This document shows, piece by piece, positions 8,026 to 40,111 of a stretch of DNA of 64,000 bases. The stretch is from Rebecca billardiae RCC1528. Taxonomy: Eukaryota > Protista > Haptophyta. Position numbers and translations under genes: made by a program. Location: contig OZ251226.1 of the NCBI GenBank assembly GCA_965240325.2, positions 992,001 through 1,056,000 on the forward strand, given 5' to 3'. The notes beneath the pieces are model-generated. The model was given only the letters and a program-made list of their open reading frames with translations. It had not been told where the DNA came from and searched no databases. The stretch's first letter is position 1, and each line of letters starts with the position of its first letter.

Positions 8026-9981
8026 ATGGCGCACGCCCCCCCCCCGAAAGGTCTGAGCGTGAGCGAAAGCCGGGGGGGGGCGGCGCACGTGCTCCGCAAA
8101 ATCAAAAAGAGGATGCGCGCAGGATTTTGGGGATTTTTCGGTAGGTGGCCACCGCGTATGAGTGGATATCGCTGCCGCAATGATTGCGTTTGTACTGCCC
8201 CTTAATTTTAACGATAGTAACACTTAGGGGAATGCAGGGTGGAATAGCACATAACACCAGCCGTGTGTTAGAACATTCCGTCATAGTAAGATGCCTGAAT
8301 TGTAAGAGCCTGAAACAGCTCGCCAACCATAGAAACGATAGGTTGGGTCGTCAGCTTTGATTCACGCGCTTCTGAAAAACAGCGTTTTAGATTAGACGCA
8401 TCGACACCTCTATCTGCGAGGATTAACAGCTCTCTGAAAACGAGTGTGTCCTGGACAACTTGAAAGGCGGAATACAATGTGCAGTTGTGACCCAAGATTC
8501 TCATGCCCATATCAAGCATGAGTACTCATTACTCATAGCACAATTCATCGGTGACTAGAATCAAGAGATCTTCAAACTGAAACGTGATTTGGACGTCGAA
8601 GAGGCACGCACGGCCCAAGGCCGAAGAGGCACGGCTCGTTGCTTGCGGTTGGCAATGCGGGGTGCTGCACTGCACAGGCGCGGTGCGACGGGGAGCATTC
8701 CTTCTCCCGGGCGGCCACCACGGCCTCGGAGGTGGTGAGGAACGCGTCGGCGACCACGGCGTGGACCACCTCCGTCGCGCCGGACACCCCGGTCGCCCCT
8801 CACCGGACTCCACCCTCGCCGCGCGCTGACCGTTTGCCGGTCGAGCCGTGCTTGCTGTGCTGCCTGCGCGGCCCGGCGCGTGCCCCCGCGTGGTGCCACA
8901 AGGCGGGTGCAGACGTGGCGGCGCGGTGGTGCGTGCGATCGGGGGACCCCACCTGAACTACGACACGGCTGCGCGCGCTCATCCGTGCTCATCACGGTGG
9001 TGGACGCGCGACTCGACGCGCGCATCGAGCGCGGCAGGCCGGCACGGCTCGGCTCGGCAGCCTGCTCGAGGCGCGAAGGCGCGCACCGCGCGCTGCCCGT
9101 GGGCGCGACGAGATGGTGCATCATCGCGCTACTTGCCATCTTCCTCTCGCCACGCCTTCGACACGATGGCTGCGACTGCTGCTCGGAGGCGCGCTCCGGG
9201 GGGCTCACGCACGCGTTCAGAATTCGGGCTCGGCGGTGACCGCGTGGACGAGGGGCAGCGCGGTGCACGGTGGCGGAGCGCGTGCGGAGCGCAGCCTACA
9301 CCTACTACACGCTCCATCCAGACACATCGCGCATGCTCGCGCGACCTCCTCGGTCCATCACGCGCGCGTGCGCGCGCGAGCAGGTTTCGGCAGCTGCCGG
9401 GCGCGAGCGAGCACGGCGCGCCGCGTTGGCGCGCGCGCACCGATACCCGTGCGCAGCTCGACGAGCGAGCGCGGTGTGTTTCGACGCGTATGGAGAGACG
9501 CGGTGCATCGTGGTGGAGCGCGTGCGGAGCGCAGCCTACACCTACTACACGCTCCATCCAGACACATCGCGCATGCTCGCGCGACCTCCTCGGTCCATCA
9601 CGCGCCCGTGCGCGCGCGACGGCAGGTGTGCACTCAGTGCAGCCGCCGGGCGCGAGCACGGCGCGCCGCGTTGGCGCGCGCGCACCGATACCCGTGCGCA
9701 GCTCGACGAGCGAGCGCGGTGGGGTTCGATGCCGCCGACCACCTCTGGCTCGGTCGCGCTCACGAGGCTGGTCGCGGGCCTAATCGTGCCGTGTATTGGC
9801 TGCCTGCTCGGTCATTGGTGAACTCGCGACGCCGACTACAAGTACAACCGCGAGTACGGTTACACGTATTCTGGTAGGCATGCTGTGATTGTGAGTTTAT
9901 GCAACTGTGATATTCTGTACATAGGGCCGTGCGCCCTCAACTTCGTTGTTCACTACCCGAAGATCGGCGTAGCCGATCATA
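8026..9981 (+). mobile_element. Helitron2/Helentron-like non-autonomous element, subfamily A (copy Y)
   Basis: 5' end ATGGCGCACG... matches W and X over ~180 bp. 3' end: subterminal IR GGGCCGTGCGCC 9924-9935, CAAC-TTC-GTTG 9938-9948, perfect hairpin GATCGGC-GTA-GCCGATC 9962-9978, then ATA. Confidence 0.7.
9270..9720 (+). repeat. ~240-bp tandem duplication inside Y
   Basis: CGTGCGGAGCGCAGCCTACACCTACTACACG... starts at both 9281 and 9521. Confidence 0.9.
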
Positions 9982-10422: not shown

Positions 10423-13008
10423 TCAGGACGACGGCGGCGACACCAATTCGCGTGCCAACCCTTCTGCAAAGCGTGCGTTGTTCGCGGCTGAGCCAGATGC
10501 ACCGCTGTAGTCCTCGTAGCTCACGCGCACGACCTGCCAGCCCAACGATTCGAGCACGCGCGTCTTCCACTGGCTGGGCCCGTTGAGTCGCTGCGCGCCC
10601 GTCCACGGGTCGGTCACGAAGTGCGACGGCCCATCGTACTCCACAGCCACCTTGGACGCGGCGCACGCCATGTCCACGACGAGCAGCCCGCCCTCGCCGA
10701 TGCGCACCTCCTCCTCGTGCGCCCAGCCGCACTCTGCGAGCGCGCGAGACAGCGCCCGCTGCGATGACGACGAGCGCACCCGTGACACTCGGTCACGGAG
10801 CAGCTGGCTACCGAGGCACTGCGCCAGCATGGACTCCACACGAGTGCGTGCGGTGCCAACGGGCAGGCGTGCATCGGCGTGCAGCGTGATCAGTGCCTGC
10901 GCCACATTGGTGTGCGCCTCCAGCGCGAGTTGCGCTTGCAGCCCAGATGCAGCAAGGAGTCGCTCGCACAGGGACAGCAGAAGCTGCCGATGCTCCATGT
11001 GCTGGGCAGCCGTCGCATACGCCCACACCGTGTTGGCCATGTTCTGCGCATTGAACTCGCCCACGCGCGCCTCGGCCTCCCGCGCGATCGCGCCATACAG
11101 CGCGGGTGCGTCCACGCCAGCTGTGGCGTACGCCCACGCCGTGTTGGCCAGCCCCTGCGCATTGAACTCGCCCACGCGCGCCTCGGCCTCCCGCGCGATC
11201 GCGCCATGCAGCGCGGGTGCGTCAACGCCAGCTGTGGCGTACGCCCACGCCGTGTTGGCCATGTCCTGCGCATTGAGCTCGCCCACGCGCGCCTCGGCCT
11301 CCCGCGCGATCGCGCCATACAGCGCGGGTGCGGCCACGCCCACTGTGGCGTACGCCCACGCCGTGTTGGCCATGTCCTGCGCATTGAGCTCGCCCACGCG
11401 CGCCTCGGCCTCCCGCGCGATCGCGCCATACAGCGCGGGTGCGGCCACGCCCGCTGTGGCGTACGCCCACGCCGTGTTGGCCAGCCCCTGCGCATTGAAC
11501 TCGCCCACGCGCGCCTCGGCCTCCCGCGCGATCGCGCCATACAGCGCGGGCGCGTCCACGCGCGCTGTGGCGTACGCCCAAGCCGTGTTGGCCATGTTCT
11601 GCGGCTTGAACTCGCCCACGCGCGCCTCGGCCTCCCGCGCGATCGCGCCATACAGCGCGGGTGCGGCCACGCCCGCTGTGGCGTACGCCCACGCCGTGTT
11701 GGCCATGTCCTGCGCATTGAGCTCGCCCACGCGCGCCTCGGCCTCCCGCGCGATCGCGCCATACAGCGCGGGTGCGGCCACGCCCGCTGTGGCGTACGCC
11801 CACGCCGTGTTGGCCAGCCCCTGCGCATTGAACTCGCCCACGCGCGCCTCGGCCTCCCGCGCGATCGCGCCATACAGCGCGGGTGCGGCCACGCCAGCTG
11901 TGGCGTACGCCCACGCCGTGTTGGCCAGCCCCTGCGCATTGAACTCGCCCACGCGCGCCTCGGCCTCCCGCGCGATCGCGCCATACAGCGCGGGTGCGGC
12001 CACGCCCACTGTGGCGTACGCCCACGCCGTGTTGGCCATGTCCTGCGCATTGAGATCGCCCACGCGCGCCTCGGCCTCCCGCGCGATCGCGCCATACAGC
12101 GCGGGTGCGGCCACGCCCGCTGTGGCGTACGCCCACGCCGTGTTGGCCAGCCCCTGCGGCTTGAACTCGCCCACGCGCGCCTCGGCCTCCCGCGCGATCG
12201 CGCCATACAGCGCGGGTGCGTCCACGCCAGCTGTGGCGTACGCCCACGCCGTGTTGGCCAGCCCCTGCGCATTGAACTCGCCCACGCGCGCCTCGGCCTC
12301 CCGCGCGATCGCGCCATACAGCGCGGGTGCGTCCACGCCAGCTGTGGCGTACGCCCACGCCGTGTTGGCCAGCCCCTGCGCATTGAACTCGCCCACGCGC
12401 GCCTCGGCCTCCCGCGCGATCGCGCCATACAGCGCGGGTGCGGCCACGCCCGCTGTGGCGTACGCCCACGCCGTGTTGGCCAGCTCCTGCGCATTGAACT
12501 CGCCCACGCGCGCCTCGGCCTCCCGCGCGATCGCGCCGAATGTGCGCTCGGCACCGCACTTCGTCGGCCGCAGCTTGGCCAGGCCGTGCGCTAAGTTAGC
12601 CACTTGGCGGGCGCTATACGGCGAGCCGTCGACTGCCGTGCCCTCCAGCCGCCGCTCCACGCGCGCGAGCAGGGCGCCAAAGGGCTTGTCGGTGCGCAAC
12701 ACGTGGCCGCGCAACGTGCGCGCGTTGCGACCCAGTCGAGAGATGGCTGTAGCCTCGTTCACCGGGTTGAACGCGTGGCTATGCGTAGCGCACACATCGA
12801 GGATGCGTTTCGCGTCACGTGCATCCGTGAGCTGCTGGTTAATCATCTTGTTGTCTGGCCGGCGTGATGGGCCGCCAGCGTGCATCGTCGCCCGTAGCGC
12901 AGCACAGGCGAGTGCGGGCGAAGGCGGCATGCGCGCTCGCAGCCCATACGCGCTACGCGGGCATGCGCCCGCACTGGTGCTCACCAACCGCCCTAACAGC
13001 CCGAGCAT
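10423..13008 (-). CDS. Helical-repeat (37-aa HPR/OPR-like) RNA-binding protein with C-terminal RAP domain, probably organelle-targeted
   Basis: 861-aa ORF with 13 full and 1 partial repeats of FNAQGLANTAWAYATAGVAAPALYGAIAREAEARVGE. RAP motifs VDMA...VAVEYDGPSHF and K.RVLESLGWQVVRVSY. The N-terminus is Arg/Ser/Ala/Leu-rich and lacks acidic residues, like a mitochondrial presequence. Confidence 0.9.
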   Translation of the reverse strand: MLGLLGRLVSTSAGACPRSAYGLRARMPPSPALACAALRATMHAGGPSRRPDNKMINQQLTDARDAKRILDVCATHSHAFNPVNEATAISRLGRNARTLRGHVLRTDKPFGALLARVERRLEGTAVDGSPYSARQVANLAHGLAKLRPTKCGAERTFGAIAREAEARVGEFNAQELANTAWAYATAGVAAPALYGAIAREAEARVGEFNAQGLANTAWAYATAGVDAPALYGAIAREAEARVGEFNAQGLANTAWAYATAGVDAPALYGAIAREAEARVGEFKPQGLANTAWAYATAGVAAPALYGAIAREAEARVGDLNAQDMANTAWAYATVGVAAPALYGAIAREAEARVGEFNAQGLANTAWAYATAGVAAPALYGAIAREAEARVGEFNAQGLANTAWAYATAGVAAPALYGAIAREAEARVGELNAQDMANTAWAYATAGVAAPALYGAIAREAEARVGEFKPQNMANTAWAYATARVDAPALYGAIAREAEARVGEFNAQGLANTAWAYATAGVAAPALYGAIAREAEARVGELNAQDMANTAWAYATVGVAAPALYGAIAREAEARVGELNAQDMANTAWAYATAGVDAPALHGAIAREAEARVGEFNAQGLANTAWAYATAGVDAPALYGAIAREAEARVGEFNAQNMANTVWAYATAAQHMEHRQLLLSLCERLLAASGLQAQLALEAHTNVAQALITLHADARLPVGTARTRVESMLAQCLGSQLLRDRVSRVRSSSSQRALSRALAECGWAHEEEVRIGEGGLLVVDMACAASKVAVEYDGPSHFVTDPWTGAQRLNGPSQWKTRVLESLGWQVVRVSYEDYSGASGSAANNARFAEGLARELVSPPSS
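11010..12537 (-). repeat. 111-bp coding tandem array, ~14 units
   Basis: Phe codons at 12498 and 11055 are exactly 13 x 111 bp apart; units are nearly identical at DNA level. Confidence 0.97.
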
Positions 13009-13734
13009 CCTTCTCCAGGCCGGCCCCGTGCGCCGCGACGCCGCGTGGAAGACGACGCCTGCGTCCCCTCCAGCTGCAGCCGTGGACTTCGGACCAACCG
13101 GTCGTCACTGCGACACGATGGCGGCCAAATCCATCCGGCCGTCGTCACGTCGGTCAAGGTTGTACGCGTGCAGGTGCGCCTGCTGCCGCGGTTCGCGCCG
13201 CACGTGCGCGCTGCGCTCGAATAAGCGGGCGCGCTACTGGGCGAGAACGAGCCGAGGGATGCGGCTCGCGCATGCGTTGGTGCGGCGGGCCCCGCCCCGG
13301 CTACTCTCCGGCGCGGCGCCCGACCGGCTGCGCCGCCCGATGTCCGCCGACAGATCAGGTCAGCGCGGCGCCTGTCAACAGTCACGGTCATCACATCGCG
13401 GTCTGGCAGCATCGCCGTTGGTGATGTTGGTGAACTCACATGCCACTGACGATGCTGACAGTGCGCGCTGTCGCCGTGGCTCTACACATGCACGTAGTCT
13501 GCGGGTCACGTCATCGACAGAGAGTCAGAGACATCAGACTCGACATTAATATTTTATTTTTAAGCACCGTTGACCACGTCACCAACGACACCAACGACAT
13601 CACATTACTGTACTGGTAGTGCGCACGTTCCGTCAACATTCATCGTACGTAATAAGTGATCGCGTCAGTGTCAGACTCCAACATCGACTTTTCGCCTCCC
13701 CGCCGCATCCGCGTCCGCGAGCCGCGAGTTCTGA

Positions 13735-15717
13735 CTACCGCGTGCTTGCCAAAGAGGGCCGTGCAGCGCTGCCGGACGTCCGGGGCGCCGACGCCGTCTT
13801 GAGATTCGGCCTAGCTCCCGGCTGGGCGCCGCGGAGTGTGCGCGGCGTCGCCGGTGCGCTCGCAGCGGCGTCGGTGCTCGACGAAGCTGCCGGGCCCGCC
13901 CGCTCGCGCTGCGGCACGCGATATCCAAACGCCACGGCCGTGCCCGCGGGCCGAATGAAGCGCTTGAGGTGCGCGCTCACCGCCGCCTGCTCCCGCGGCG
14001 TGCGCTTACGCAGGCGTTGGGCCGCCGCGTACCCTGTGAGCCGAAACACGGCGCGCGGCATCACGTGGCTCACCCACACGTCGACGAAGCCGGCGTGCCC
14101 GCCGCCCCCCGCGCCGCGGCTCATGTGCGCAGCAGCAATCTCGTGACCGAGCAGCAGCAGCTCGAGCGCGCGCGCGCGCTCACGCGCCGGCAGCAGGTGG
14201 TGGGTGCGGGGGGACCACGGCTCGCTCGCGGAGATGAGCACCCGCGCCGCGGCGTGGTACGGGTCCTCGGCGAGCGCCTCTCGCGCGAGCTCGAGCGCCG
14301 TCGGCGCGCGCCGGTCGAGCCCCACGAGCTCGCGCGCGCTCCGCGGCCGCGCCTGATTCCCGCCGATGCCGTCAGCATGGCCGCCGCGCCGCAGCTCGGC
14401 GATCACCTCATCTCGGCGGAGCCACGCGACGTGCTGCAGCCGGCTGTCCCAGCTGGCGACGCGGCGCAGGTGCGCGACCAGCGGGTGCTTGCGGCTCGGC
14501 GCGCCCAGATGCATCTCGATGCGGTGCGCGAGGGCGAGCAGTCGCTGGCTGTGGCACTCGTCAGTGCAGGTGGCGTGCGCGCAGAGCAGCCGCGCCTTTG
14601 GAAGCAGCGCGTCGAGCGCGCGCGCGGGCGGGAGCGGCGCCGCTTCGTCGTCGGCGACGGCCATGGCGACGGCCATGCCCTGCGCGGCGGAGAGGCACGC
14701 GTACTCGAGGGCCGTCACGCCGCTCCTCGCGCCCAGCCCCTCGCACACGTCGGCCTCCCAGGGCTCGGCGCTGGCGGCGAGCAGCGCGCGCATACACGCG
14801 AGGTCTCCGTACCGCGTGGCGACGTGGAGTGGCGTGACGTCGCCGTGGAAGAAGCGCGCGGCGCGAGGCCCGCCGCGCTCCGTGGCGGATGCATGCGCGC
14901 GCAGCAGCAGCCGCACGCACGCCGCGCTCCCCGCGTGCGCCGCGCAGAGCAGGGGCGTGCCCATGGGGCTCCACTGCTCGAGCAGCCGCGCGCCCGCGCG
15001 CACGAGCTCGCGCACGATGCGCACGTGCCCGCGCTGGCACGCGCGATGGAGCGCGGTGAGCCCCGCGTGGTCGGCGGCGTTCACGTCCGCCTGCGCGCGC
15101 AGCAGCAGGCGCACGCAGCCCAGGGGGCTGTGCACGGGCGGCAGCGCCTGGCACGCGACCATCAGAGCCGTCTCGCGGCTCACGTCGTCATATGGAGCGT
15201 CCACGTCGACGCCCGGCTTGGCGAGCGCGCCGCGGCGCGTGCCCGAGATGAGCAGCCGGGCGCACTCGACGTGGCCCTCCATGCACGCCAGCGCGAGGTG
15301 CTCGGGCTCGGCGCGTACGCTCGAGTGCTCGAGCAGCACGCGCATGCACCGCACGTAGCCGACAGAGCACGCCATCGCGAGCGGAGCAAAGCCAAAGCCG
15401 CTGCTGAGCGCCGGCTGTGCACGCGCGTCGAGGAGCGCTCGTACGCAATTCTCGTGCCCACCCACTAGCGCAAGGTGCAGCGGCGTGAGCATGGTCCCCG
15501 CAAAGTCGTCCAGCGCCCCACGGCCCGCATGCCTCAGCTGCACGCACAGCATCTCCACGTCCCCGCACGTGCAGGCCTCGCGCACGAGCATGGCGGCCGA
15601 GGGCATCCACGGCTCGTTGCGCCAAGAGAACGTGCGCGCCCTTCTCTCACCCGCGTGCGGCGTGGTGCGGCGCCGCGGACGACGCGGCGGAGATGTGCGC
15701 CCCGGCTGCTCACTCAT
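13735..15717 (-). CDS. Ankyrin-repeat protein
   Basis: Several ankyrin motifs (TPLHLALVGGHENCVRALL, TALHRACQRGHVRIVRELV, TPLLCAAHAG, TPLHVATRYG). Start is uncertain (15717 or 15606); the ORF extension to 16167 is antisense to STI1. Confidence 0.8.
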   Translation of the reverse strand: MSEQPGRTSPPRRPRRRTTPHAGERRARTFSWRNEPWMPSAAMLVREACTCGDVEMLCVQLRHAGRGALDDFAGTMLTPLHLALVGGHENCVRALLDARAQPALSSGFGFAPLAMACSVGYVRCMRVLLEHSSVRAEPEHLALACMEGHVECARLLISGTRRGALAKPGVDVDAPYDDVSRETALMVACQALPPVHSPLGCVRLLLRAQADVNAADHAGLTALHRACQRGHVRIVRELVRAGARLLEQWSPMGTPLLCAAHAGSAACVRLLLRAHASATERGGPRAARFFHGDVTPLHVATRYGDLACMRALLAASAEPWEADVCEGLGARSGVTALEYACLSAAQGMAVAMAVADDEAAPLPPARALDALLPKARLLCAHATCTDECHSQRLLALAHRIEMHLGAPSRKHPLVAHLRRVASWDSRLQHVAWLRRDEVIAELRRGGHADGIGGNQARPRSARELVGLDRRAPTALELAREALAEDPYHAAARVLISASEPWSPRTHHLLPARERARALELLLLGHEIAAAHMSRGAGGGGHAGFVDVWVSHVMPRAVFRLTGYAAAQRLRKRTPREQAAVSAHLKRFIRPAGTAVAFGYRVPQRERAGPAASSSTDAAASAPATPRTLRGAQPGARPNLKTASAPRTSGSAARPSLASTR

Positions 15718-15898
15718 CACTGTCCACCTACGGTGGGGCGTCCGCACCTCTCCATCGTCGTGCGTCCGGTGCGTCCGGGCGGCGATCTCACGTCCACCAC
15801 CGTGTCCGGGCGCAACGCAACGCCTGTCAAGCAAGTCACGTCTCGGTGCTGGTGAGCGCGCGTCTGGACCGCTGATAAGCGCCGGCGCCGACGCAGCC

Positions 15899-17893
15899 AT
15901 GGCTGATGCGCACAAAGCACTCGGCAACGAGGCGTTCAAGGCGCAGAAGTTCGACGAGGCGATCGAGCACTTCACCAACGCCATCGGCGCGGACCCGCAG
16001 GCCCACGTGCTGTACAGCAACCGCTCGGCCGCGTACGCGTCGCTAAACCGGTTCGACGAGGCGCTGGCAGATGCGGAGAAGTGCATTGGGCTGAACGGGG
16101 CGTGGGGGAAGGGGTACTCGCGCAAGGGCGCGGCGCTCGAGGGCCTTGGGCGGCTCGAGGAGGCCATCGCCGCCTACGAGCAGGGCCTCGCGCAGGAGCC
16201 GGAGAACGCCGCGCTGAAGCAGGGGCTCGCGGTCGCCAAGGATAAGGCTGACGCGGGGGCGCTCGGCGGCGCGGGGCAGATTGGCAACATGTTCGCGGAC
16301 CCGGCGCTGTTCGGCAAGATCGCGGGCAACCCACAGACCGCGGCCTTCCTCAACATGCCCGACTTCGTGACCAAGCTGCAGGAGCTGCAGCGCAACCCGT
16401 CGTCGATCGACCGCCACCTGCAGGACCCGCGCATCATGCAGGTGCTCGGCATGCTGATGGGCGTGAACGTGAGCATGGGCGGGGCGGGCGAGGCGTTCGG
16501 CGAGGACGCGCGCGCGCCGCCGCCCAAGCCGCAGGAGCCCGAGCCCGAGCCCGAGCCCATGGAGGAGGAGCTCACCGACGAGGAGAAGGCCGCGCGCGAG
16601 ACGAAGCGGCAGGCGGACGCGCACAAGGAGCAGGGGAATGCGGCATACAAGGCGAAGAAGTTCGACGAGGCGATCGAGCACTACACGAAGGCGGGGGAGA
16701 TGATGCCCGAGGAGATGACGTACATCACCAACCTCGCCGCCGTCTACTTCGAGCAGCGCGAGTACCAGAAGTCCGTCGACACGTGCAAGAAGGCGATCGA
16801 GGTGGGCCGCGCGAACCGCGCCGACTACAAGAACGTCGCCAAGGCGTACGCGCGTATGGGCAACGCGTACGTCAAGCTCGAGGAGCTCGAGTCGGCGATC
16901 AAGGCGTACGAGGACTCGATGCTGGAGAACCGCACGGAGGACGTGTACAAGCGGCACAAGGACGCGGTCAAGGTGCTCAAGGAGAGGCAGGACAAGGCGT
17001 ACATCTCGGAGGAGCTCTCGCTCAAGGCGCGCGAGAAGGGCAACGAGCTCTTCAAGGAGGGAAAGTACCCGGAGGCCATCGAGGCGTACACCGAGGTGCG
17101 CGCGCCCTCTCGCGCGCGCGCGCGCGCAGCGCACAGGGGGCGGGGCGCGCGGCGCGTGCGCGGCGGGTATGGGAGGTTGGCGTTACGCCGGCGGTGCCGA
17201 GCGAGCGCCCACGGCTGACGCGCTCGCGCCCGCCCCGGCGCTCGGGACGCCGCGCCGCAGGCGATGCGGCGCAACCCGGCAGACCACGTGCCGTACAGCA
17301 ACCGCGCGGCGTGCTACCAGAAGCTGATGGAGTGGGTGCTCGCGCTCAAGGACTGCGAGAAGTGCATCCAGATGGCGCCCACGTTCGTGAAGGTTTGGAA
17401 CCGCAAGGGCGGTACGTGCCTGCTGCGCGCGCGCGGCCGCCCTTCGCGCCGTGGGGCGCGAGCGCGCCGGCAGCTTGGGCCGCGCGCGCGCCCGCGCGCT
17501 CACGCGCACGCGCCGCGCCGCGCCGTGCGCACGGCTGCCTCGACCTCTGCGGTGCTCGCAGGCCTGCACTTCCACTTGAAAGAGTACCACAAGGCGCTGG
17601 ACGCGTACCAGCAGGCGCTCAAGCTCGACGAGAACAGCGCGGAGGCAAAGGACGGCGTCGAGCGCACGATCGTCGCCATCAACATGGGCAGCAACGACGA
17701 GGACCAGCAGGCGCGCGCGCAGCGCGCGATGGCCGACCCTGAGATCCAGGCGATCCTTCAGGATGGCACGATGCGCAACGTGCTCAGCGAGATGCAAAGC
17801 GACCCCAAGTCGGCCAACAAGTTCATGTCCGACCCCTCGATCAAGAAGAACATCGAGAAGCTCATCGCCGCCGGCGTGCTCGCCATCAAGTAG
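15899..17893 (+). CDS. STI1: Hsp70/Hsp90 organising protein (STI1/HOP), 3 exons
   Basis: TPR1 (KALGNEAF...YSNRSAAY), DP1, TPR2A, TPR2B and DP2 (MADPEIQAILQD...KLIAAGVL). Exons 15899-17095, 17261-17411, 17562-17893; GT-AG introns of 165 and 150 nt. Confidence 0.95.
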
Positions 17894-18291: not shown

Positions 18292-19344
18292 TTATTGTTC
18301 AGAGCCGCCGGCGCAGTCGGAGTCGGAGACCAGGGTCGCCGTGCAAAGCAGACGCCGCCGAGGATCATCCGGTGGGAGAACGACCCTTCGCGCAGTGACG
18401 ACCCCGTCGGGAACGGGGACCACAGACTGATGCACACACGTTGGAGCTGCTCGTCGGGCAAAGCCAGCAAGGGCATCGCAAGGCTGAGCAGGATCATCTT
18501 GGCTCCGCGAGCACGACTGCGGCTGCGGCAGGTCCTGCTCGGCACCAATGTGAACATCGTTGCCGTGAGTGACACTGTCAGGTGAGCGCCAGAGCGCGAC
18601 TTGGGCTGTGGGCAGTGGCGGCGGCAGCGGCGACTGCGGCAGTGCAATGCCAATGGCGACACCGCGTGCAGTAGCGGCTCTGAGGTCGGTGTGCTCTCGC
18701 TGTCGCTTGGCGTTGTGCATTGGCTGGCTGCCTGGGTGTTCTGCCAGCCTGCGCCTGTGCATGGTGCGCTGGCGTTTGTGGAGCATGCCGGCCAGCTTGT
18801 GCTCAGCGCACCGGCTGGCGCGCGTGTCGTCCAGCATGCCAAATGAAGGCCACTTGGTGCAGCCCGCGTGATCGCACTTGCGGCTCGTCACATTGACCAT
18901 GCCGGCCAGCTTGTGCTCAGCGCACCGGATGGGGCGCGTGTCGCCCGGCATGCCGAAGCATGGCAGCGTGGTGCAGCCGGTATGAGAACACTTGCGGTTC
19001 TTCACATCGACCATGCCGGCCAGCTTGTGCTCAGCGCACCGGATGGGGCGCGTGTCGCCCGGCATGCCGAAGCATGGCAGCGTCGTGCAGCCGGCATGAT
19101 CGCACATGGGACTCTTCACATTGACCATGCCGGCCAGCTTGTGCTCAGCGCATCGGCTGCCGCGCGCGTCGCCCGGCATGCCAAATGAAGGCCACTTGGT
19201 GCAGCCCGCGTGATCGCACTTGCGGCTCGTCACATTGACCATGCCGGCCAGCTTGTGCTCAGCGCATCGGCTGGCGCGCGCGTCGGCCGGCATGCCGTAC
19301 GACGGCCCCTTCACGCAGCCGGCATGATCGCACTTGCGGGCCAT
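18292..19344 (-). CDS. EsV-1-7-type cysteine-rich repeat protein (five 38-aa repeats)
   Basis: Repeat CxxxGCxxxPxFGMPGDxRxxRCAEHKLAGMVNV with a 114-bp period at ~18780-19335. The C-terminal half is non-repetitive and less certain. Confidence 0.75.
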   Translation of the reverse strand: MARKCDHAGCVKGPSYGMPADARASRCAEHKLAGMVNVTSRKCDHAGCTKWPSFGMPGDARGSRCAEHKLAGMVNVKSPMCDHAGCTTLPCFGMPGDTRPIRCAEHKLAGMVDVKNRKCSHTGCTTLPCFGMPGDTRPIRCAEHKLAGMVNVTSRKCDHAGCTKWPSFGMLDDTRASRCAEHKLAGMLHKRQRTMHRRRLAEHPGSQPMHNAKRQREHTDLRAATARGVAIGIALPQSPLPPPLPTAQVALWRSPDSVTHGNDVHIGAEQDLPQPQSCSRSQDDPAQPCDALAGFARRAAPTCVHQSVVPVPDGVVTARRVVLPPDDPRRRLLCTATLVSDSDCAGGSEQ

Positions 19345-19538
19345 GACGACACGATGACGACGCGTGATCCGCCCCCAAATACGGCCCTTGCCCCAAAGGT
19401 GGTATAAAAAAATGGCGGGCCGTAGTACTCCCCCATATTTATCATACTATTCAGTAATAACGATTTATGTACTCGACGTCCGGCCGGGTGTTGCGGCGGC
19501 GGCGGGCGCGCGGCTGAGCATCGTCGGCACCGGCGCCC

Positions 19539-21659
19539 ATGGACGCGCGCACGTTCGATGCACGCGCGGTCTTCGCGCGCACGCTTCGTGGCATCGAGCG
19601 CGACGAGGGCTCTATCGCAGCCTTCGCCCTCTCGAACGGCCTGGAGTACTTTGGCCTCACGCGCGTTCCGGGCGGCGTGTGCTATCGCGAGTGGGCGCCA
19701 GCGGCAGTCAGCGTCGCGCTGATTGGCGACTTCAACGGGTGGCGAGCGCACGACGAGCACCGCTGCGCGCGCAACGCGTGGGGTGTGTGGGAGCTCTTCC
19801 TGCCCGACGTCGCCGGCCGCCCCGCGATCGCCCACGGCTCGCGCGTGAAGGCGCTGGTCGGCGTGTGCGACGCCTCCTGCAAGGCCACGGCATCTGCGCG
19901 GCCCTCGGACGAGCCAGCGCGCGTGGTGGCGCGCATCCCGGCGTGGATCCAGCGCACACACCGCGACCCAACGTCGGGGGGCTTCAGCGGCGTGTACGTC
20001 GACCCGCACGAGCAGCCGTACGCGTGGCTTCACCCGCGGCCGCCGCGGCCGGGCACGCTCAAGATTTACGAGGCGCATGTGGGCATCTCCTCGGGCGAGG
20101 AGCGCATCGCCTCGTGGGAGCACTTCCGCGTGCACGTGCTGCCGCGCGTGGCTGCGCTCGGGTACACCGCGCTGCAGCTCATGGCGGTGCAGGAGCACGG
20201 CTGCTACGAGTCGTTTGGGTACCACGTCACTTCCTTCTTTGCGCCCGCGTGCCGCTTCGGACCGGCCGACGAGCTGAAGCGGCTGATCGACGCGGCGCAC
20301 GGGCTCGGGCTGCTCGTGCTGATGGACGTGGTGCACTCGCACGCGAGCGCGAACGCGACCGAGGGCCTCTCGCGCTTCGACGGCTCCTCGGGCGGCTACT
20401 TCCACTCGGGGCCGCGCGGCCACCACGGCGTGTGGGGCTCTCGCCTGTTCGCGTACGGCCGGACTGAGGTGCTGCGCTTCCTCCTCGCGAACGCGCTGCA
20501 CTACGCGCGCGAGTACCGGTTCGACGGGTTCCGCTTCGACGCGGTCACGACGATGCTGTACGCCCCGCAGGGGCTCGCGCGTAAGCTCGCGAGCTCGCAG
20601 CCCCTGTGCGCGGGCGCGGGCGGCGCGCACGTTCCGTCGAGCGCTGCGCACGCCGCCGGCCACCGCACGGGCACGGCCGTGCACGTGGACCTCGACGCGG
20701 TGGTCTACCTCATGCTGGCCAACTGGGCGCTGCACGACGGCTACGCGATGTTCGGGCTCGAGGCGCCGCTGATCACCGTGGCCGAGGAGTGCACGGGCTG
20801 GCCAGGGCTGTGCCAGCCCCCGGCCCGCGGCGGGCTGGGCTTCGATTATCGGCTGAGCATCGGGGTGCCGCCGATGTGGGAGGCGGTGGCGTCGCGGCAC
20901 GCGCCCGGGCGCTGGCCGCTGCAGCAGGTGGCGACCGAGCTGTGCAAGCGGCGGCCGGCCGAGCCGACCATCGCGTACGCCGAGTGCCACGACCAGTCGC
21001 TCGTGGGCGCGCAGACGCTCGCCTTCAGGCTGATGGGCGCGGACATGTACACTCACATGACGCGGCTCGCGGCGCCGACGGCCAAGGTCGAGTTCGGCCT
21101 CGGCGCGCTCAAGATCATCCGGCTGCTCACGTCCGCGCTGGGCGGCGACGGGTACCTGAACTTCATGGGCAACGAGTTCGGCCACCCGGAGTGGGTGGAC
21201 TTCCCGCGCGTCGGGAACGGCTGGTCTGCCGCGCACGCGCGCCGCCGATGGGACCTCGTCGATGACGAGCTGCTGCGGTACAGGGGGCTGCAGGCGTTCG
21301 ACGCGGCCATGCACGCCGCGGAGGCGGGGCTGGGCTGGCTGGCCGCGCCGCACGCCAGCATCCTGTGCGTGGACGAGCCGAACCAGCTCCTCGCCTTCGA
21401 GCGCGCCGGCTTGCTCTTCGTCGCGAACGCGCACCCGACGCACTCGGCACATGAGTACGTGGCGCGCGGCGCTCGGGCCGAGTACGGGGCCGCGGCCGAG
21501 CTGATTCTGAACTCGGATGCGCTGGAATTCGGTGGCCGCGCTCGGCCAGCGTCGCTGCGCGCGGCACCAGGGGGTGAGCCGGGCTGCGTCGTCTTCGGTG
21601 CACCTCCCGCCACGATCGCCGTCTTCGCTGCCGTTGGCACGCTGCAAGCTGCTGGGTGA
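19539..21659 (+). CDS. GBE1: 1,4-alpha-glucan branching enzyme (GH13, eukaryotic GBE1/SBE type)
   Basis: REWAPAA (CBM48), IYEAHVG, FGYHVTSFFAP, MDVVHSHAS, FDGFRFDAVT (nucleophile D), VAEE (acid/base E), YAECHDQ, YLNFMGNEFGHPEWVDFPR. Confidence 0.93.
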   Translation: MDARTFDARAVFARTLRGIERDEGSIAAFALSNGLEYFGLTRVPGGVCYREWAPAAVSVALIGDFNGWRAHDEHRCARNAWGVWELFLPDVAGRPAIAHGSRVKALVGVCDASCKATASARPSDEPARVVARIPAWIQRTHRDPTSGGFSGVYVDPHEQPYAWLHPRPPRPGTLKIYEAHVGISSGEERIASWEHFRVHVLPRVAALGYTALQLMAVQEHGCYESFGYHVTSFFAPACRFGPADELKRLIDAAHGLGLLVLMDVVHSHASANATEGLSRFDGSSGGYFHSGPRGHHGVWGSRLFAYGRTEVLRFLLANALHYAREYRFDGFRFDAVTTMLYAPQGLARKLASSQPLCAGAGGAHVPSSAAHAAGHRTGTAVHVDLDAVVYLMLANWALHDGYAMFGLEAPLITVAEECTGWPGLCQPPARGGLGFDYRLSIGVPPMWEAVASRHAPGRWPLQQVATELCKRRPAEPTIAYAECHDQSLVGAQTLAFRLMGADMYTHMTRLAAPTAKVEFGLGALKIIRLLTSALGGDGYLNFMGNEFGHPEWVDFPRVGNGWSAAHARRRWDLVDDELLRYRGLQAFDAAMHAAEAGLGWLAAPHASILCVDEPNQLLAFERAGLLFVANAHPTHSAHEYVARGARAEYGAAAELILNSDALEFGGRARPASLRAAPGGEPGCVVFGAPPATIAVFAAVGTLQAAG

Positions 21660-22543
21660 GCCACGCTCGGCTGGCGGGGCCACCGCTGCCACGGCAATCG
21701 CCATGACTCGGCATGCTCGAGCTGCGTTGACGTTCCTGGACGACATCCGCCAACACGACATCGCGTCGTCGATCGCGCGTGTCAGAGCTGATCAAGAGCA
21801 GCACGGCATCGAGTCTCGAGAGTCTCAGTCCTAATCAGAAGAAGTATGTCGCATGAGTCCGATGGCGATGCTGAGCAGCACCTGCGCTGGTCATTCCGCT
21901 ATAACTCGGGCTGTGAGTCGGGCGGCTGACTACAGTACTGATGTTATTAATATACGGCTACTACAGTCTACACAGGTTATTACTCGTAGTCAGGACGACT
22001 CGTCGTGACAGGTAGTCTGTTAGTATCACTTAGTTCCGCGCAGCACCATATGCATTGTAGCGCAGCTACGGAATCTCAGGAATATACTACGACTAGCCTA
22101 TTACTTGCTGCTATACCCAGAGGCCAGCGCAGATGACCGTCCATCAGTGTGAGTGAGTCCGCTGCCTGACCGAGTATGTATGACATCAGGAATCTTCAGG
22201 TCCTCACTACGAGTTCGTTCAGTGATGATGTCAATTCAGCAGTAGTCGCGTCGTTCGGACGATCGTCGGATTCGGAGAGTGACTGCTGACAGTATAGCGC
22301 TACCGCCGCTACTGTAGTACGCGCAATGCTCCGAAAACTCGCTGCATACCGCCGCTACGGTACGCGCACTCAAAACTCGCTGCTGCTGCGAGTCTGATAG
22401 CTACTACTCTGTACTCAGTCAGCTAATATAAGTCAGGAGTGCACTGAGTGACGTATTAGAGTCTGAGTCTGCTGATGGGTATAGCGTCGGAGTCACGCAC
22501 TGACAGAGCCGATGACGTCATGCAGTCAACGACGATGTCGTCG

Positions 22544-33800: not shown

Positions 33801-33965
33801 TTTGCTGTCCGGGCGCCGTGCAAGCGTCGCCATCGTGCGGTGATTCGTGGGGTGCCCTGGTGGTCAAGCGAGCCGCTCAACTGAAGAAGGCGGTTGAGCA
33901 CCTCCGCGGAATACCGGCCGCTCGTCGAGCACGCCGCCGCGGGAGGGAGCAAGCGCGCGGGGAAC

Positions 33966-36900
33966 ATGGGTGACCTGCATTTCGACGCGCGTGTGCGCAC
34001 GGCGCACGAGCGCTTCGCCAACCACGAGCACAAGCTCGCGCAGGAGCGCGAGCACTCGGCCGAGCCGGGGTACGCGGCGGGCGCGGGCAGCGCCTTCCGG
34101 AACAGCGTGCTCGGCCGCTCGCTCGTCGAGCTCGAGGCGGCCGAGCGCACAAAGGCCGTCCAGCGCGGCGTGCCTGTGAGCAAGGCGGGGTCGACGATCG
34201 GCGGGGTCACCGTCGGCACGGCGTTCGGGCCCGCGCCGCCCGCCGTGCCGCTGCTCGCCTCGGCCAGCACCGGTCTCACGCACTCGTACCGCGTGCGGCT
34301 CGACGCGCGCTCGCGGCCGGCGAGCGCCACGGCGGGCATGGTGGGCGCGCACGGTGGGTACAACGCGCCCGTCTCGGTGAGCACGTCCAAGCTGCGCAGC
34401 GCCGTCCTCGCCTCGCGCATGGAGCGCCCGCCGCACGACCCGGCGGCCGCGCCGCCCGCTCGGCGGCCGCGGCCAGCCTCTGCGACTTATGCGCGCACGC
34501 CGGCGTGCGCGGCCGAGGCGGGCATGGGCGGGAGCGCACCGGGCTCGATCGCGCCGACGCGCGCGGCGAGCCGGCCAACCTCCGCCTCCTCGGCCCGGCC
34601 GAGCTCGGGCCGCCCGTCGCGGCCCGGCTCAGGCCGCTCGCGAGCGTCGGTGGACGCGCGCGCGGGCGCGCCCGCCCCGCCGTACTACGCTTGTTCGGAC
34701 GGCGTGCGCGCAGTGGACCGGCCGCTGAGCGCGGCCGTGGTCGGGTCGCGCTTCGAGGGCAGCCCGTACGCGGCGGCGAGCTCGCGCCCCTCCTCGGCGA
34801 CGGCGGGCCTGCGCGTCCCGTTCGCCGCGTGGGGCGAGGCCACGCAGCGCGGCTCGGCGCCGCCGCCTCCGGTGCAGCCGCCGCCGCCGCGAGCGCCGCA
34901 CCCAAGCGGCGGCGCGGGCGCGGGCGCGGCCGCCGAGCACCATCGGCCGCAGCCGGTGCGCGCGGGCTCGCCGGTGCCGCCGGCGCCCACGCCGCGCGAC
35001 GGCGCGCACGTCGGCCGGACGACCCCTCGGCACGCCGCCGAGCGGAGCGACGCCGGCTCGCCGCCGGGCGGCGCGCGCTCGCGCGCGCGCTCACCGCAGA
35101 GCGGCGCAGAGTCAGCGCGCGCGCGCTCGCCGCTGAGCGGCGCGAGCGGCGGCGAGGAGGAGGAGCTGAGCATGGCGACGATGACGCCGCGCGAGCCGGG
35201 GTACAGCCGCGTGCCGAGCTCGGCGGCGACGCCGCGCCCGACGCCCTCCTCAGCCACCGCCACCATGCTCCGCCTCCGCCACCCGGCGAGCGCGCGGGCG
35301 ATGTCTGTCAGTACCTCAGAGCGCACGCTGGGATGGGACGGGCAGCCGGCCGCCGCGCGCTCGCTGCTGCGCGCGGAGGCGCTGGCGGCGATCGACGCGG
35401 AGGCGCACGAGGCGTCGCAGTGGGCGCGGGAGAGCGCGGTCGAGGGCGAGGCCGCGCCGCCTTTTTTCCCGATCGACGCCTTTGACGGCTCTGAGTTTGA
35501 GTCTGCGGCGTGCCACGCCGCGCTGCGAGCGCTGCCGCGCCGGCCGCCGCCCAAGCCCGAGCGCTCGGACGCGGCGGGCGCGCGCGAGCCGGCGCGCGAC
35601 GAGCTCGGCGGCTTCGACGGCGTGAAGGCCCACTCGCGGTACTACTTCAACGACGGCTCCTGGCAGTGGTCCGCGTGCCGCGTGCTCGCGTTCGACGAGG
35701 CGTCGCGCCTCTTCACAATTGAGTGGGGGGCCTCGGCGGTGTCTCGGCCGGCGAGCCGCGCGCCCACGCCGCGCGGCTCGCCGCCGCTGCAGCCGCCGCC
35801 GGCGCCGCGCAAGCCGGCGTCGCGGCTGAACCTGCTCTTCGACGACGAGTCGCCGCTCCCCTTCGCGCTGCGCGTGATCGATGCGCTGGACGGGCGGCGC
35901 AGGCTCGAGGCACAGCTGCGGTACGGCGGACTGATCGGCTCGCTCCCCCTCGAGCACGCGCCAACCGCCGCGCGGCACACGCTCGTTGGGATCGAGCGGC
36001 GCGCGGCGCTGCGCCGGGTGCCCGAGGGGCGCGAGGGCGCGAAGCGGCGCGCGCTGCTCGAGCGCCTGTGGGACGAGGTGCACACCGACTATCGGCGCGC
36101 GCACGTCGCCCTCGCCTTTGAGGAGCGAGAGCACGTGGCGCCGTGGCGCGCGGCCGGCGCCGTGCACCCGGCGCTGGCGGCGAGCGCGGCCGTGACGGTG
36201 CGGCTGGCGCCCGCCGCGCGCGAGTGCTTCGCGGTGGGCGCGGTGCGCGTGACGGCCTCGAGCGCCGAGCTCGCGCGCCGCGTCGCGCCCGAGCTCGCCG
36301 TCGCGCAGACGGCCGAGGGGCGCGCGCCCTTCGGCGCGGTGCTCGCGGCCGTTTCCGAGCAACTTCCGAATCTCGAGGGGCAGCGGGCAATCTCGCGCAT
36401 CTGGGCGCAGCTCGCGCCGCTGGCGGACGCGCTGGGCCTCGCGGAGGGCGGCGACGCGCCGGCGCGCGCGCCCGAGCCCGGCGCGGCGGCCGGCGCCGAG
36501 CCCGACGGCGGCGCCGACGGCGAGGCCGCGGCCGGCGCCGACGCGGCCGCCGGCACGCCGGCGCGCGCCGGCGCGGCCGCGGCCGGCGCGACGCTGCTGC
36601 GCGGGCGCGCGGCCTGGCCGATGAGCCTGCTCGAGTACGAGGCGTTCCAGCTGGCGCAGACGGAGTACGCGGTGAAGCACTTCAACGGCGTGGTCCTCGC
36701 CGACGTGTGCGCAGCGATCCTCGGTGCCGTCGGCGCGCGGCCGCATCTTTGCCCGAGCCAGGCGCACGCAGACGCTCACGACCGACTGGCCGTGGTGGCA
36801 GACACGCTGATCGCCCGCGCGCTGCGCGAGCTCGTGGCCGCGTCGGTGCGCGCGTGGGCGGGCCCGTTCGTGACCGCGGAGTACGCGCCGGCGGCGCACG

Positions 36901-39900
36901 CCGCGCCCGCCGGCGCGCCGCCCGCCGACGAGCCCACACCCGCCGCTGGGCGAGAGTTTGCCGCGGTGATCGGCGCGGCTCGGCCGATCCTGCGCATTGA
37001 GGCGTGCCTTGTCGAGGGCGGCGCGGGCGGCGCGGGCGGCGCGGGCGGCGACGGCGGCGAAGCGGCCACGGTCGTGTTCGAGCCGACGCTCGAGGCGTGC
37101 GCGCGCGGCGTGCTCGGCGCGGCGTCGCGCGCGCTGGGCGAGGCAGAGACGGAGCTCAAGCGCACGCCGCGCGCGTGGCGTGCCACGCCCGAATTTACCC
37201 ACCTGTGGGTGGAGGACTCAGATGTGCCCGTGCACGAGCCGAAGCCGCTCGGGCCGCTGCTGCGGCTGCGCTCGGACGCGGCGCTGCGCGACGAGCTCGC
37301 GGCGGGCGCGCCGGGCGCGGTGGAGGCCGTGCTGGCGGAGCAGGCGGCGCGGCCGCGCGCGCTCGCCGCCGCGTACGCCCGACTTGCGGCTAAGCTCCCC
37401 GCGCACCCAGATGAGCTGGTGAGCAGGCTGCACGCGCGCACGCGCGCCGCGGACGCGGAGGCGTGGCGCGACGTGTGGTCGGCCGAGGTGCGCGCGCTGC
37501 GCCGCACGCGCGACGACGTGCTCGCGCTGTGCCCGGGCGAGACGCTGCCGCTCGGCGTGTATGATGTGCACGTCTCGCGCGTGCGCGACGCAATCTGCGC
37601 GCGCGCCGACGCCGCGCTCGACGCGCTCTGCGGCGCGGTCGCGGAGCGCGCGCGCGCGGACGTGCGCGCAATCAACTCGGAGGCGGAGGCGGCGATCAAG
37701 GCGATCGCCGCCACGTCCGCCGACGCGGAGGCGTGGTCGTCGCAGCGCGCGCTCTTCGACGCCTCGAGCGAGCTCGCCATCGCGCTCGAGCGCCGCGCGC
37801 ACGACGCGACGCTTCGGCTCGCCGTCCTCGGCGCCGCCGAGCGCGACCTCGACGAGTCGCTCGAGCTGGCGCACTATCACGCGCTCGGCGCGGCGCAGCG
37901 GGTGGCGTACGCGGCGGACGAGCACGAGGGCTCGCTGCTGCTCACGTCGGAGCGGCTGATGGGCGCGCTGCGCGCGCAGCGCGACGAGGTGCAGACCGAG
38001 GTGGACGCGCTCACCGAGGCCGTCACACGCTTCCGCGCACACTCGGACGAGTCGCTCGACTCGGCCGAGGCCCTCGCCGCGACCGCCGAGGGCCTGGACG
38101 GCCGGCTGAGCAAGGTGCTCGAGGCGGCGGCGGAGGTGAACCGGCGCGAGGCGATCTTCGGCTGGCCGACGACGGTGTTCGACGAGCTGCAGGCCGCGGT
38201 GGCCGACTTTGCGCCGCTCGCGCAGCTCTGGCGGCTCTCCGCGGAGATTCTCAGCGCACACGCCAACGCGCTCGACGGACCGCTGCGGATGGTGGACGTG
38301 GGTCAACTGGACGACGACATCGGCCGCTGGGCGACCGACCTGGGCCGGCTCGCGCGCGCGGTGCGCGCGCGCGCGGCGGCGACGGGCACCGAGTCCGGCG
38401 CGCCGCTCTCCGTCGTCGACGCCGTGCGAGACGTGCTGGCGGGCGCGCGCGAGTTCCTGCCGCTGCTGCGCACGCTAAACGCTCCCGGCCTCAAGCCGAG
38501 GCACTGGGAGCAGATCTCCGAGCTCGCCGGCGCGGCGCTCAACCCGCTCGGCGAGTCGTCGCTCTCGCTCGAGGCGATCCTGCGGATGAAGCTGGACGAG
38601 CCGACGATGGAGGGCATCCAGGAGATCGCCGACGTCGCCTCGCGCGAGCACGCCATCGAGCGCGCGCTCGAGAAGATGACGGCCGCGTGGCGCGCGGCTG
38701 ATCTCGAGATCGCGCCGCACGGCCCGTCGGGCTCGCGCGTGCTGCGCGCGATGGACGAGATGATGCTCACGCTGGACGAGCACACGGCGCGGTGCCACGC
38801 GATGGCGGCGTCGCCGCACGCGCAGCCCGTCGCGGACGGCCTGCACGCGCTGCTCACGCAACTCCGACTCACGGCGGACGTTCTCGAGGTCTGGTTCCAA
38901 TGCCAGCGCGGCTGGCTCTACTTGCAGCCGCTGTTCGCCGCGCCAGACATCGAGCGCGCGATGCCGTCGGAGGCGCGGCACTTCGGCGCGATCGACCGCG
39001 TGTGGCGCTCGACGATGGACGCGGCCGCCGCGCGGCCCAACGCGCTGCGCTTCTGCGCCGGCTCGCCGCGGCTGCTCGAGACGCTTCGCGAGACGGCGCG
39101 CCACCTCGACTCAGTCCTCAAGGGCCTCGCCGAGTTTTTGGACGGCAAGCGGATCAACTTCCCGCGCTTCTTCTTCCTCTCGGACGAGGAGCTGCTGCAG
39201 CTGCTCTCGCACGCGCAGGACCCGACGGCGGTGCAGCCGCACCTGACGCAGTGCTTCGAGGGCATCGCGCGACTCGACTTTGACGTCGACGCCGCGATCG
39301 CCGCCGCGGCCGAGGCGGCCGCCGCCTCGGCCGCCGCGCCGCCGCGCTCTACCGTCTTCTTCGCGGGCGACGCGCCGCCCGCGCCGCCCACGCCGCCCAC
39401 GCCGCCCGCGCCGTCCAAGGCGGGGCTCATCGTGGCGATGCGCTCGGTGGAGGGCGAGGTGGTGCGCTTCGAGCCCGCCGACGTCGTCGACCCGGAGCTC
39501 GGGTACCGGCGCGGCAAGGTCGAGCTGTGGCTGGCCGAAGTCGAGAGCAGCATGCGCCGCGCGGTCAAGGCGGCGGTGGCGCGCGCGATCGGCGCGCGCG
39601 GCGAGCGCAGCCGCGCGCAGTGGGCGCTGGCGCACCCGGCGCAGGCGGTGCTCGCGGCGAACGCGCTCTTCTGGACCTCCGACGTCGAGGCCGCCCTCGC
39701 CGACGCCGCCGCCGCCGAGCGGCTTGACGCGGCGGACCTCGTCGTCTTCCGCTCGCTGCAGCAGCTGCACAGCCGGCAGTCGTCCGAGCTGGGCGAGATC
39801 GTCGAGCTGGTGCGCGGCGAGCTGAAGCCGGTGCAGCGCGTGCTGCTCGGCGCGCTGATCACGCTGGACGTGCACCAGCGCGACGTCACCGCCGAGCTGC

Positions 39901-40076
39901 TCGACGCCGAGGTGCGCGACCCGTCCGAATTCGCATGGCAGGCGCAGCTGCGATACTACTCGCCGCCAGACGAGCGCGCGGCCGCCTCCGCCGCCGCCGC
40001 GGCGGGCGCGGGCGCGGGCGCAGGCGGCGCGCCGGCGGAGGGCGATGCGGGCGGGGCCGGCGGCGAGGGCGACGAT

Positions 40077-40111
<35 letters not shown>

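Follow-up and report, generated by a model that had tools for sequence, protein, structure and literature searches.

A haptophyte HPR-RAP gene family with near-identical repeats and two independently hypervariable repeat positions

The window analysed here, a 64,000-nucleotide stretch of DNA from the haptophyte Rebecca billardiae RCC1528 (contig OZ251226.1, positions 992,001 to 1,056,000), contains at 10423–13008 on the minus strand a gene for a helical-repeat protein of the HPR-RAP type, which consists of one single-exon open reading frame (ORF) of 861 codons from ATG to TGA and is one of nine intact paralogues. The HPR-RAP family is known; what is new is a uniform, TALE-style version of it with two independent hypervariable positions in the repeat. 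A Pfam scan of the protein matched DUF1601, the 37-residue HPR-type repeat, at 1.8e-23 (82.5 bits against a cut-off of 25), and RAP (PF08373) at 5.1e-7 over residues 789–834 (30.0 bits against a cut-off of 24.2; 35.1 bits in the genome scan). The closest solved protein by sequence is T. brucei RESC6 (9.3e-24), followed by RAP/HPR proteins of the T. gondii mitoribosome; ASA2 was also matched. The minus-strand frame was taken as real because its GC content by codon position (0.73/0.57/0.84) is as expected for a true frame in a GC-rich genome. Other frames across the array, on both strands, give ORFs of 445–988 codons (for example window 10583–13549, plus strand), and these are artefacts of GC-rich periodic sequence, not genes.

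The protein begins with a probable organelle presequence (residues 1–50; 12859–13008, on the minus strand like all features of the gene given below), which contains no Asp or Glu, has seven Arg, is rich in Ala, Leu and Ser, has an isoelectric point (pI) of 11.9 and is disordered in the AlphaFold2 model, with a predicted local distance difference test score (pLDDT) below 50. The MLGLLGRL motif at its start is common to all nine paralogues and to a decayed copy. Targeting is predicted from this composition, and because residues 1–50 lack the uninterrupted hydrophobic stretch that a secondary-plastid signal peptide would need, import is probably into the mitochondrion rather than the plastid. Degenerate helical hairpins follow (residues 51–170; 12499–12858), with helices at residues 53–166 and a pLDDT of ~80–92; this part is basic (pI 10.3) and includes a degenerate 'repeat 0', in which a Q-x-x-A-N-L-A-H helix A precedes an array-type helix B. 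The array itself comprises 13 full 37-residue HPR units (residues 171–651; 11056–12498) and a fourteenth, terminal half repeat (residues 652–688; 10945–11055), which retains helix A (FNAQNM...) and has diverged in the remainder. A linker (residues 689–747; 10768–10944), helical in the models and with a pLDDT of 54–67 in the domain model, leads to the RAP domain (residues 748–857; 10438–10767). The ~300 bp upstream of the ATG (13009–13320) are ~90–94% identical in seven of the eight other paralogues (blastn) and probably represent the 5′ untranslated region and promoter.

Tandem Repeats Finder reported a single array for the gene, at 11018–12537, with a period of 111 nt, 13.7 copies, 95% matches, no indels and a score of 2704, and unit starts lie exactly 37 residues apart in all nine paralogues. 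A preliminary description of this DNA had counted 14 near-identical units. This holds for the 13 full units (mean pairwise identity 90.7% in protein and 95.5% in DNA), not for the fourteenth, which is only half a unit and diverges after codon 16. Units 2/3/13, 5/11 and 7/10 are identical in DNA. The strings that had been read for the first six residues (FNAQEL, FNAQGL, FNAQGL, FKPQGL, LNAQDM, FNAQGL, FNAQGL, LNAQDM, FKPQNM, FNAQGL, LNAQDM, LNAQDM, FNAQGL, FNAQNM) proved exact on in-register parsing, as did the position-5 string, E-G-G-G-D-G-G-D-N-G-D-D-G-N; the minor A/D and A/V swaps are likewise real and fall at positions 19 and 16, and the singletons G17R, Y24H and E37D add to them. AlphaFold2, run with the paralogues as alignment, modelled the array with a pLDDT above 90 and placed helix A at unit positions 3–16 and helix B at 21–33. 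By these helix limits, position 2 directly precedes helix A, as its N-cap, and position 5 lies within its first turn, while the conserved R34 is located in the loop leading to helix A of the next unit.

Variation within arrays was measured on the 117 full units of the nine paralogues. Entropy was highest at position 5 (1.65 bits; N, G, E, D, A) and position 2 (0.95; N, K), followed by positions 6 (0.65; L, M), 32 (0.56; E/V) and 3 (0.41; A, P), with all others at or below 0.33 bits. The variation at position 32 is confined to a gene cluster on contig 13, and the differences at positions 35 and 36 lie mostly between the contig-8 genes and this cluster, not inside arrays. Codons 2, 3, 5 and 6 show a nonsynonymous diversity (piN) of 0.260 and a synonymous diversity (piS) of 0.057 (piN/piS 4.6), compared with 0.040 and 0.083 at the other 33 codons, or 0.021 and 0.087 when codons 32, 35 and 36 are left out (piN/piS 0.24–0.48). 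Synonymous polymorphism is abundant at codons 15, 16 and 31 and nearly absent at the hypervariable codons. Entropy and piN/piS thus bear out the earlier statement that the first six residues hold most of the variation, the scaffold being otherwise constant.

Positions 2 and 5 vary independently of each other (p=0.35), M6 is linked to D or N at position 5 (p=1.6e-6), and P3 was found solely with K2 (p=6e-5). The informative positions are 5 and 2, to which 6 and 3 are tied, and the residues at 2 (N or K) and at 5 (N, G, E or D) consequently define ~8 main combinations. In the contig-13 cluster, position 32 was only weakly correlated with 2, 5 and 6, whether in its own unit or in adjacent ones (p 0.017–1, uncorrected). 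Homogenisation is active in these arrays, because other changes have spread along single arrays or clusters (T22 in L008, the gene at 0.245 Mb on contig 8; A19 in the window gene; A35/S36 in the contig-13 cluster); positions 2, 5 and 6 are nevertheless mixed.

The nine paralogues, window gene included, were collected from the source assembly (72 Mb, 41 contigs). They are 84–92% identical to the window protein and alike in the N-terminus and the RAP domain. Four lie on contig 8, at 0.245, 0.952, 0.969 and 1.002 Mb, the last being the window gene, and five form a 22-kb tandem cluster on contig 13. Their arrays contain 10, 13, 13, 13, 13, 14, 14, 14 and 22 units, with 89–93% protein identity between the units inside an array. 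The preliminary description had proposed that variable-residue strings be compared among paralogues, and in the nine intact copies every array string is different. The duplicated segment comprises the coding sequence and ~300 bp upstream, with similarity ending at the stop codon; the exceptions upstream are L004, with only ~60 bp of similarity, and L005, for which only ~140 bp upstream were compared. In the flanks, that is, the non-repeat N- and C-terminal parts, synonymous divergence (dS) is 0.02–0.23 and the ratio of nonsynonymous to synonymous divergence (dN/dS) is mostly 0.35–0.55, which reflects moderate purifying selection on young copies.

Despite this low flank dS, the specificity strings are almost unrelated between copies. 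The window gene and its 0.969-Mb neighbour differ by a flank dS of 0.035–0.054, yet their longest common block is one unit type. A four-unit block is common to the 0.952- and 0.969-Mb genes (reached by 0 of 300 shuffles), a five-unit block is common to two contig-13 genes, and the longest array, the 22 units of L005 (G000:C13:2018586-2022053), contains an internal six-unit duplication. The arrays are mosaics produced by unit duplication, deletion and conversion, and the supposition that units are shuffled by recombination is supported both between and within paralogues. A sister gene, L015 (G000:C27:828404-830386), has an almost identical RAP domain, a different N-terminus and ~5 degenerate HPR units (58% identical), and is likely to give a picture of the ancestor before unit amplification. 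The decayed copy, L018 (G000:C14:588747-589391), has the same N-terminus as the family, carries an in-frame TAG at the conserved NKMIN motif and loses the frame after one unit. These two genes indicate that the uniform arrays are a recent amplification within an ordinary HPR-RAP lineage, in which the family turns over by birth and death.

Self-similar arrays in other organisms, defined by a mean unit identity of at least 60%, were drawn from the best 120 public homologues. This yielded 47 arrays from haptophytes, pelagophytes and metagenomes, whose 319 units form 21 unit-consensus groups. Positions 5 and 2 again vary most within these arrays, with entropies of 1.77 bits (E, N, A, D, G) and 1.58 bits (N, K, T, S, D), respectively, and the next positions lie at ~1.0 bit. 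One or the other ranks first in variability in ~30 of the 47 arrays, where ~3 would be expected by chance over the 31 positions not fixed by the anchor pattern. A 484-residue protein of the stramenopile Pelagophyceae sp. CCMP2097 has four or five near-identical HPR units, with almost all differences between them at positions 2 and 5; the uniform-array design therefore exists outside haptophytes too. The highest mean unit identity among the 47 arrays is 79%, compared with 89–93% in the family of the window gene.

The PPPEW motif was not found in the protein, the Pfam scan gave no PPR or TAL_effector match, and FAST_1 and FAST_2 gave no match at E values up to 0.1. Together with the DUF1601 and RAP matches, this assigns the protein to HPR-RAP; it is not OPR in the strict sense and is TALE-like in design only. 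The OPR/HPR label of the preliminary description must accordingly be narrowed to HPR, since the DUF1601 unit is 37 residues long (38–40 in OPR) and lacks PPPEW; HPR has been classed within OPR in one paper (PMC13126933). Membership of the PPR family was rejected because no PPR family appeared in the Pfam scan, and the likeness to PPR10 is at fold level only. The term 'TALE-like' holds as a design analogy and fails as a statement of common descent: TAL_effector was not matched, the unit has 37 residues rather than 33–35, and the variable residues are 2, 3, 5 and 6 rather than 12/13. A strict FASTK composition (FAST_1, FAST_2 and RAP) was also rejected, as FAST_1 and FAST_2 were undetected in the protein. 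The FASTK relationship is nonetheless real, because precomputed matches list PF06743 (FAST_1) for nearly all homologues of the protein; the FAST_1 profile fails to score the uniform repeats. A genome scan with the 37-position DUF1601 profile gave no match, and none in control genomes either, so that this negative carries no weight.

Structural comparison places the protein in the same surroundings. With the full model, Foldseek returned T. brucei RESC proteins, HPR proteins of the T. gondii mitoribosome, OPR proteins of the Chlamydomonas/Polytomella mitoribosome, ASA2 and PPR10, and the Atlas neighbours are exclusively FAST_1/RESC6/RAP clusters. The public protein collection does not contain the protein itself, and the best matches there are 51–59% identical to it; the best named homologues are from Pavlovales sp. 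CCMP2436, Phaeocystis, Chrysotila and pelagophytes. In the first AlphaFold2 model the RAP part had a pLDDT below 50, and a second model of the C-terminal 175 residues, built from a 70-sequence alignment, was used instead. In this model, residues 748–857 have a pLDDT above 90 and form an alpha-beta-beta-beta-alpha-beta core of the PD-(D/E)xK type. Foldseek matched it to RAP proteins of the T. gondii mitoribosome (8.7e-5), the homing endonuclease I-Bth0305I, Vsr, ngo0050 and the RAP module of FASTKD4, and DUF559 and REase_MTES_1575, both PD-(D/E)xK families, matched just below their Pfam cut-offs. An 81-sequence alignment showed that E767, D779, E790, D792, G793, P794, H796, K815, R817 and G823-W824 are kept. 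Pfam, AlphaFold2 and Foldseek thus agree with the initial description of a helical-repeat array joined to a RAP nuclease-fold domain.

Known HPR-RAP proteins (Hillebrand et al. 2018; FASTK/FASTKD1-5; RESC6; T. gondii mitoribosome) share with the window protein the 37-residue two-helix repeat, DUF1601, a C-terminal RAP domain and an organelle-type N-terminus. Their HPR tracts are short, with a mean of ~6 repeats in a 57-genome survey (bioRxiv 10.64898/2026.01.22.701003), and degenerate, whereas in the window family 13–21 full units are 89–93% identical in protein and vary at few positions. A 2025 review states that HPR 'has no motif' and describes HPR and OPR as normally degenerate and without a known code (PMC12691811); this review and the survey uphold the degeneracy that the preliminary description had stated. 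The NCL OPR-RAP proteins of Chlamydomonas are likewise a lineage-specific, clustered and fast-duplicating helical-repeat and RAP family (PMC8635915, PMC8226300). In contrast to the nearly identical 37-residue HPR units without PPPEW of the haptophyte gene, they belong to a green alga and its chloroplast and have OPR repeats of 38–40 residues with PPPEW in arrays of 7–12. Their retargeting by single substitutions, also stated in the preliminary description, is upheld by NCC1 and NCC2, in which such changes in a repeat led to new chloroplast mRNA targets that are destabilised and degraded (PMC8635915). Plant RFL-PPR genes also form clusters of young paralogues with diversifying selection on few residues near the start of helix A, which were later proven to be code residues (PMC5138203), but their repeats are 35-residue PPR units, far less uniform, and there is no RAP domain. 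TALEs resemble the window family in design, with near-identical helical repeats, few hypervariable residues, a terminal half repeat, degenerate flanking repeats and recombination-shuffled arrays; they are not homologous, and are secreted bacterial effectors that bind double-stranded DNA through 33–35-residue repeats whose variable pair sits in a loop. Neither algal nor RAP proteins are mentioned in a published screen for TALE-like architectures (PMC5472282).

We favour, with moderate confidence, a reading in which the gene is nuclear and its product is imported into an organelle, probably the mitochondrion, and acts there as a sequence-specific RNA processing or stability factor of the HPR/FASTK-like-RAP group, under diversifying selection. 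Positions 2 and 5 correspond in topology to residues 2 and 5 of PPR proteins, which hold and read the base in the PPR10–RNA structure, and it is for this reason that the array is read as a modular reader of single-stranded RNA and the RAP domain as its effector. Behind the presequence and a few degenerate hairpins, the 13 units and the half unit would stack as a long alpha-solenoid. The scaffold would be constant from unit to unit, and the differences would lie at two sites of helix A: its N-cap, where position 2 is N or K, and its first turn, where position 5 is G, D, N or E. Positions 3 and 6 would follow these two, and the string of variable residues would set which stretch of single-stranded RNA, ~13–15 nt long, is bound. 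R34 and the positive end of the helix dipole could hold a phosphate. The C-terminal RAP domain, with its PD-(D/E)xK fold, would then cut or mark the bound transcript. The nine young paralogues would diversify by duplication, deletion and conversion of units while selection keeps the specificity residues different, in the manner of plant RFL-PPR and Chlamydomonas NCL genes. The protein may thus bind RNA with one repeat per nucleotide, may expose positions 2 and 5 in the groove and may cleave its target in an organelle, all of which we infer. Human FASTKD5 is an endoribonuclease with cleavage shown in vitro, and the choice of its substrates is presumed to lie with its HPR part (PMC12242768). In the RFL-PPR family, the RNA-contact residues stood out by diversifying selection at a time when the code was still unsolved (PMC5138203).

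Several observations weigh against the proposal of an RNA-processing factor. In the 81-sequence alignment, three C-terminal RAP residues that most of the family conserves are replaced (P830S, E833D and W834Y). The repeat tract is acidic (pI 4.6, 29 K+R versus 49 D+E), which is atypical of a simple electrostatic RNA binder; designer PPR repeats are likewise acidic. The Foldseek matches include proteins in which such a fold serves purely as a scaffold, namely RESC subunits and the ATP synthase component ASA2 of Polytomella. A piN/piS above 1 in a gene-converting array is no formal proof of positive selection, and positions 2 and 5 correspond in the model to the N-cap and N3 of a helix capping box (N-x-x-E in relatives), so that part of their variability could be structural. 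A decoding attempt on part of the organelle DNA likewise gave no signal for a code at position 5. The residues N, G, E and D at this position were assigned to bases for the nine arrays, in both array orientations and on both strands, against 12.4 kb of mitochondrial contig 40 and 7.5 kb of plastid contig 41. In these 20 kb, ~1/8 of the organelle DNA, no position-5-to-base map beat shuffled arrays: the unrestricted 256 maps matched A/T runs only, the 24 one-to-one maps scored 98, where shuffled arrays averaged 98.8, and with maps of three or more bases the score was 106, which 27 of 100 shuffles reached (mean of the shuffles 104.8).

Contig 40 is the mitochondrial genome, of at least 40.8 kb, and contig 41 is the plastid genome. 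The exact D1 protein sequence is otherwise represented only in raw-read assemblies, and its 90% cluster also contains the D1 of Pavlovaceae (Diacronema lutheri). The mitochondrial cox1 is divided into at least four pieces, which extend over more than 10 kb and across the ends of contig 40. Its frames are open for 915–1161 codons through the exons, which suggests intron-encoded proteins.

The capping geometry is the starting point of an explanation by neutral concerted evolution, in which positions 2, 3, 5 and 6 of a recently amplified unit, homogenised by unequal crossing-over and gene conversion, are tolerant surface or capping sites that carry old variants and no code. N/T/S/D and E/D cap interchangeably at the N-cap and N3 of helix A, the codon variants are few (AAT/AAG at codon 2 and AAC/GGG/GAG/GAC at codon 5), and the identical units and common blocks imply that variants are spread by copying, not by recurrent mutation. 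However, K at position 2 and G or N at position 5 are poor capping residues, and while the entropy at positions 2 and 5 approaches its maximum, other exposed positions, those of helix B, hardly vary inside an array. In addition, piN/piS is ~10–20 times higher at the hypervariable codons than elsewhere, other substitutions have been homogenised along arrays and those at positions 2 and 5 have not, and these two positions lead variability in the 21 unrelated unit-consensus groups of other algae. We therefore think neutrality unlikely. It is also improbable that the protein is a scaffold, serving a ribosome, an ATP synthase or a RESC-like complex of the organelle as a structural or adaptor subunit, with variable residues that tune protein contacts and a RAP domain that lacks catalytic activity. 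A single fixed partner is hard to reconcile with nine paralogues of 10–22 units whose strings are unrelated, and RAP retains E767, D779, E790, D792, H796 and K815, although a scaffold would suit the acidity of the tract, the lack of three conserved C-terminal RAP residues, the Foldseek matches to RESC scaffold subunits and to ASA2 (matched by sequence as well) and the location of RAP/HPR proteins at the periphery of the T. gondii mitoribosome (PMC11652630). HPR proteins tested to date bind RNA (PMC6212722).

The same source reports that PbHPR1 bound RNA, not DNA (PMC6212722), which speaks against a true TALE/TALEN analogue acting on DNA, that is, a DNA-binding nuclease or factor of the organelle genome. 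The RAP model does resemble the DNA endonucleases I-Bth0305I, Vsr and DUF559/ngo0050, with DUF559 and REase_MTES_1575 only just short of their Pfam cut-offs, and the mitochondrial cox1 of the same genome is interrupted by long intron ORFs; FASTKD5, RESC and the mitoribosomal relatives, however, all act on RNA. Two-helix solenoids of the PPR/HPR type wrap single strands, and a DNA target is accordingly very unlikely. We give just as little credence to a non-functional copy whose frame is open only because GC-rich repeats seldom hold stop codons. The open frames of 445–988 codons on both strands over the array, the absence of the protein from the public collection and the decay of one family member, L018, are what such a copy might show. 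Against this, the non-repeat parts (146 and ~195 codons) are open in all nine copies with a dN/dS of 0.35–0.55 in most comparisons, a GC content of 0.84 at third codon positions is found in the HPR-RAP frame alone, the RAP residues are conserved, and L018 itself shows that loss here takes the form of an in-frame TAG and truncation.

A bolder form of the RNA-reader interpretation is that positions 2 and 5, with 3 and 6 as helpers, constitute a one-repeat-one-nucleotide code for the HPR/OPR/FASTK superfamily, and that the arrays are natural 'RNA TALENs' with an active RAP endoribonuclease. This we put forward tentatively, and consider it possible rather than probable. PPR and PUF proteins have known RNA-reading residues, in contrast, to our knowledge, to HPR, OPR and FASTK proteins. 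These proteins control how organellar RNA is processed, in algae and trypanosomes as well as in malaria and Toxoplasma parasites and in humans (FASTKD1-5). If the proposal were correct, setting the nine strings against the organelle transcriptome would make the code readable and would then permit RNA-targeting protein design. The window family would be a cleaner pointer to such residues than the RFL genes were, with its constant scaffold, nine differing strings, two independent positions and recurrence in unrelated algal lineages, and if a code exists its uniform repeats would be the easiest start for designer RNA binders or RNases.

The genes that neighbour the HPR-RAP gene are ordinary nuclear genes. 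An 810-residue ankyrin-repeat protein is encoded directly upstream (13735–16167, minus strand) and lies outside the duplicated unit. On the other side, ~700 bp past the HPR-RAP stop codon, a 240-bp tandem duplication (9259–9729; 1.9 copies, 91%) is present that does not occur in the paralogues. A 114-bp tandem repeat, with a period that is a multiple of three, occupies 18784–19339 (4.9 copies, 86% identity), and its end overlaps an ORF at 19311–21761 (minus strand) for which Pfam gave no match. At 33894–49400 (plus strand), the window contains a complete dynein heavy chain gene, an unbroken and apparently intronless ORF of 5168 codons with 74–79% GC, which encodes the domains DHC_N2, AAA_6-9, MT stalk and Dynein_C.

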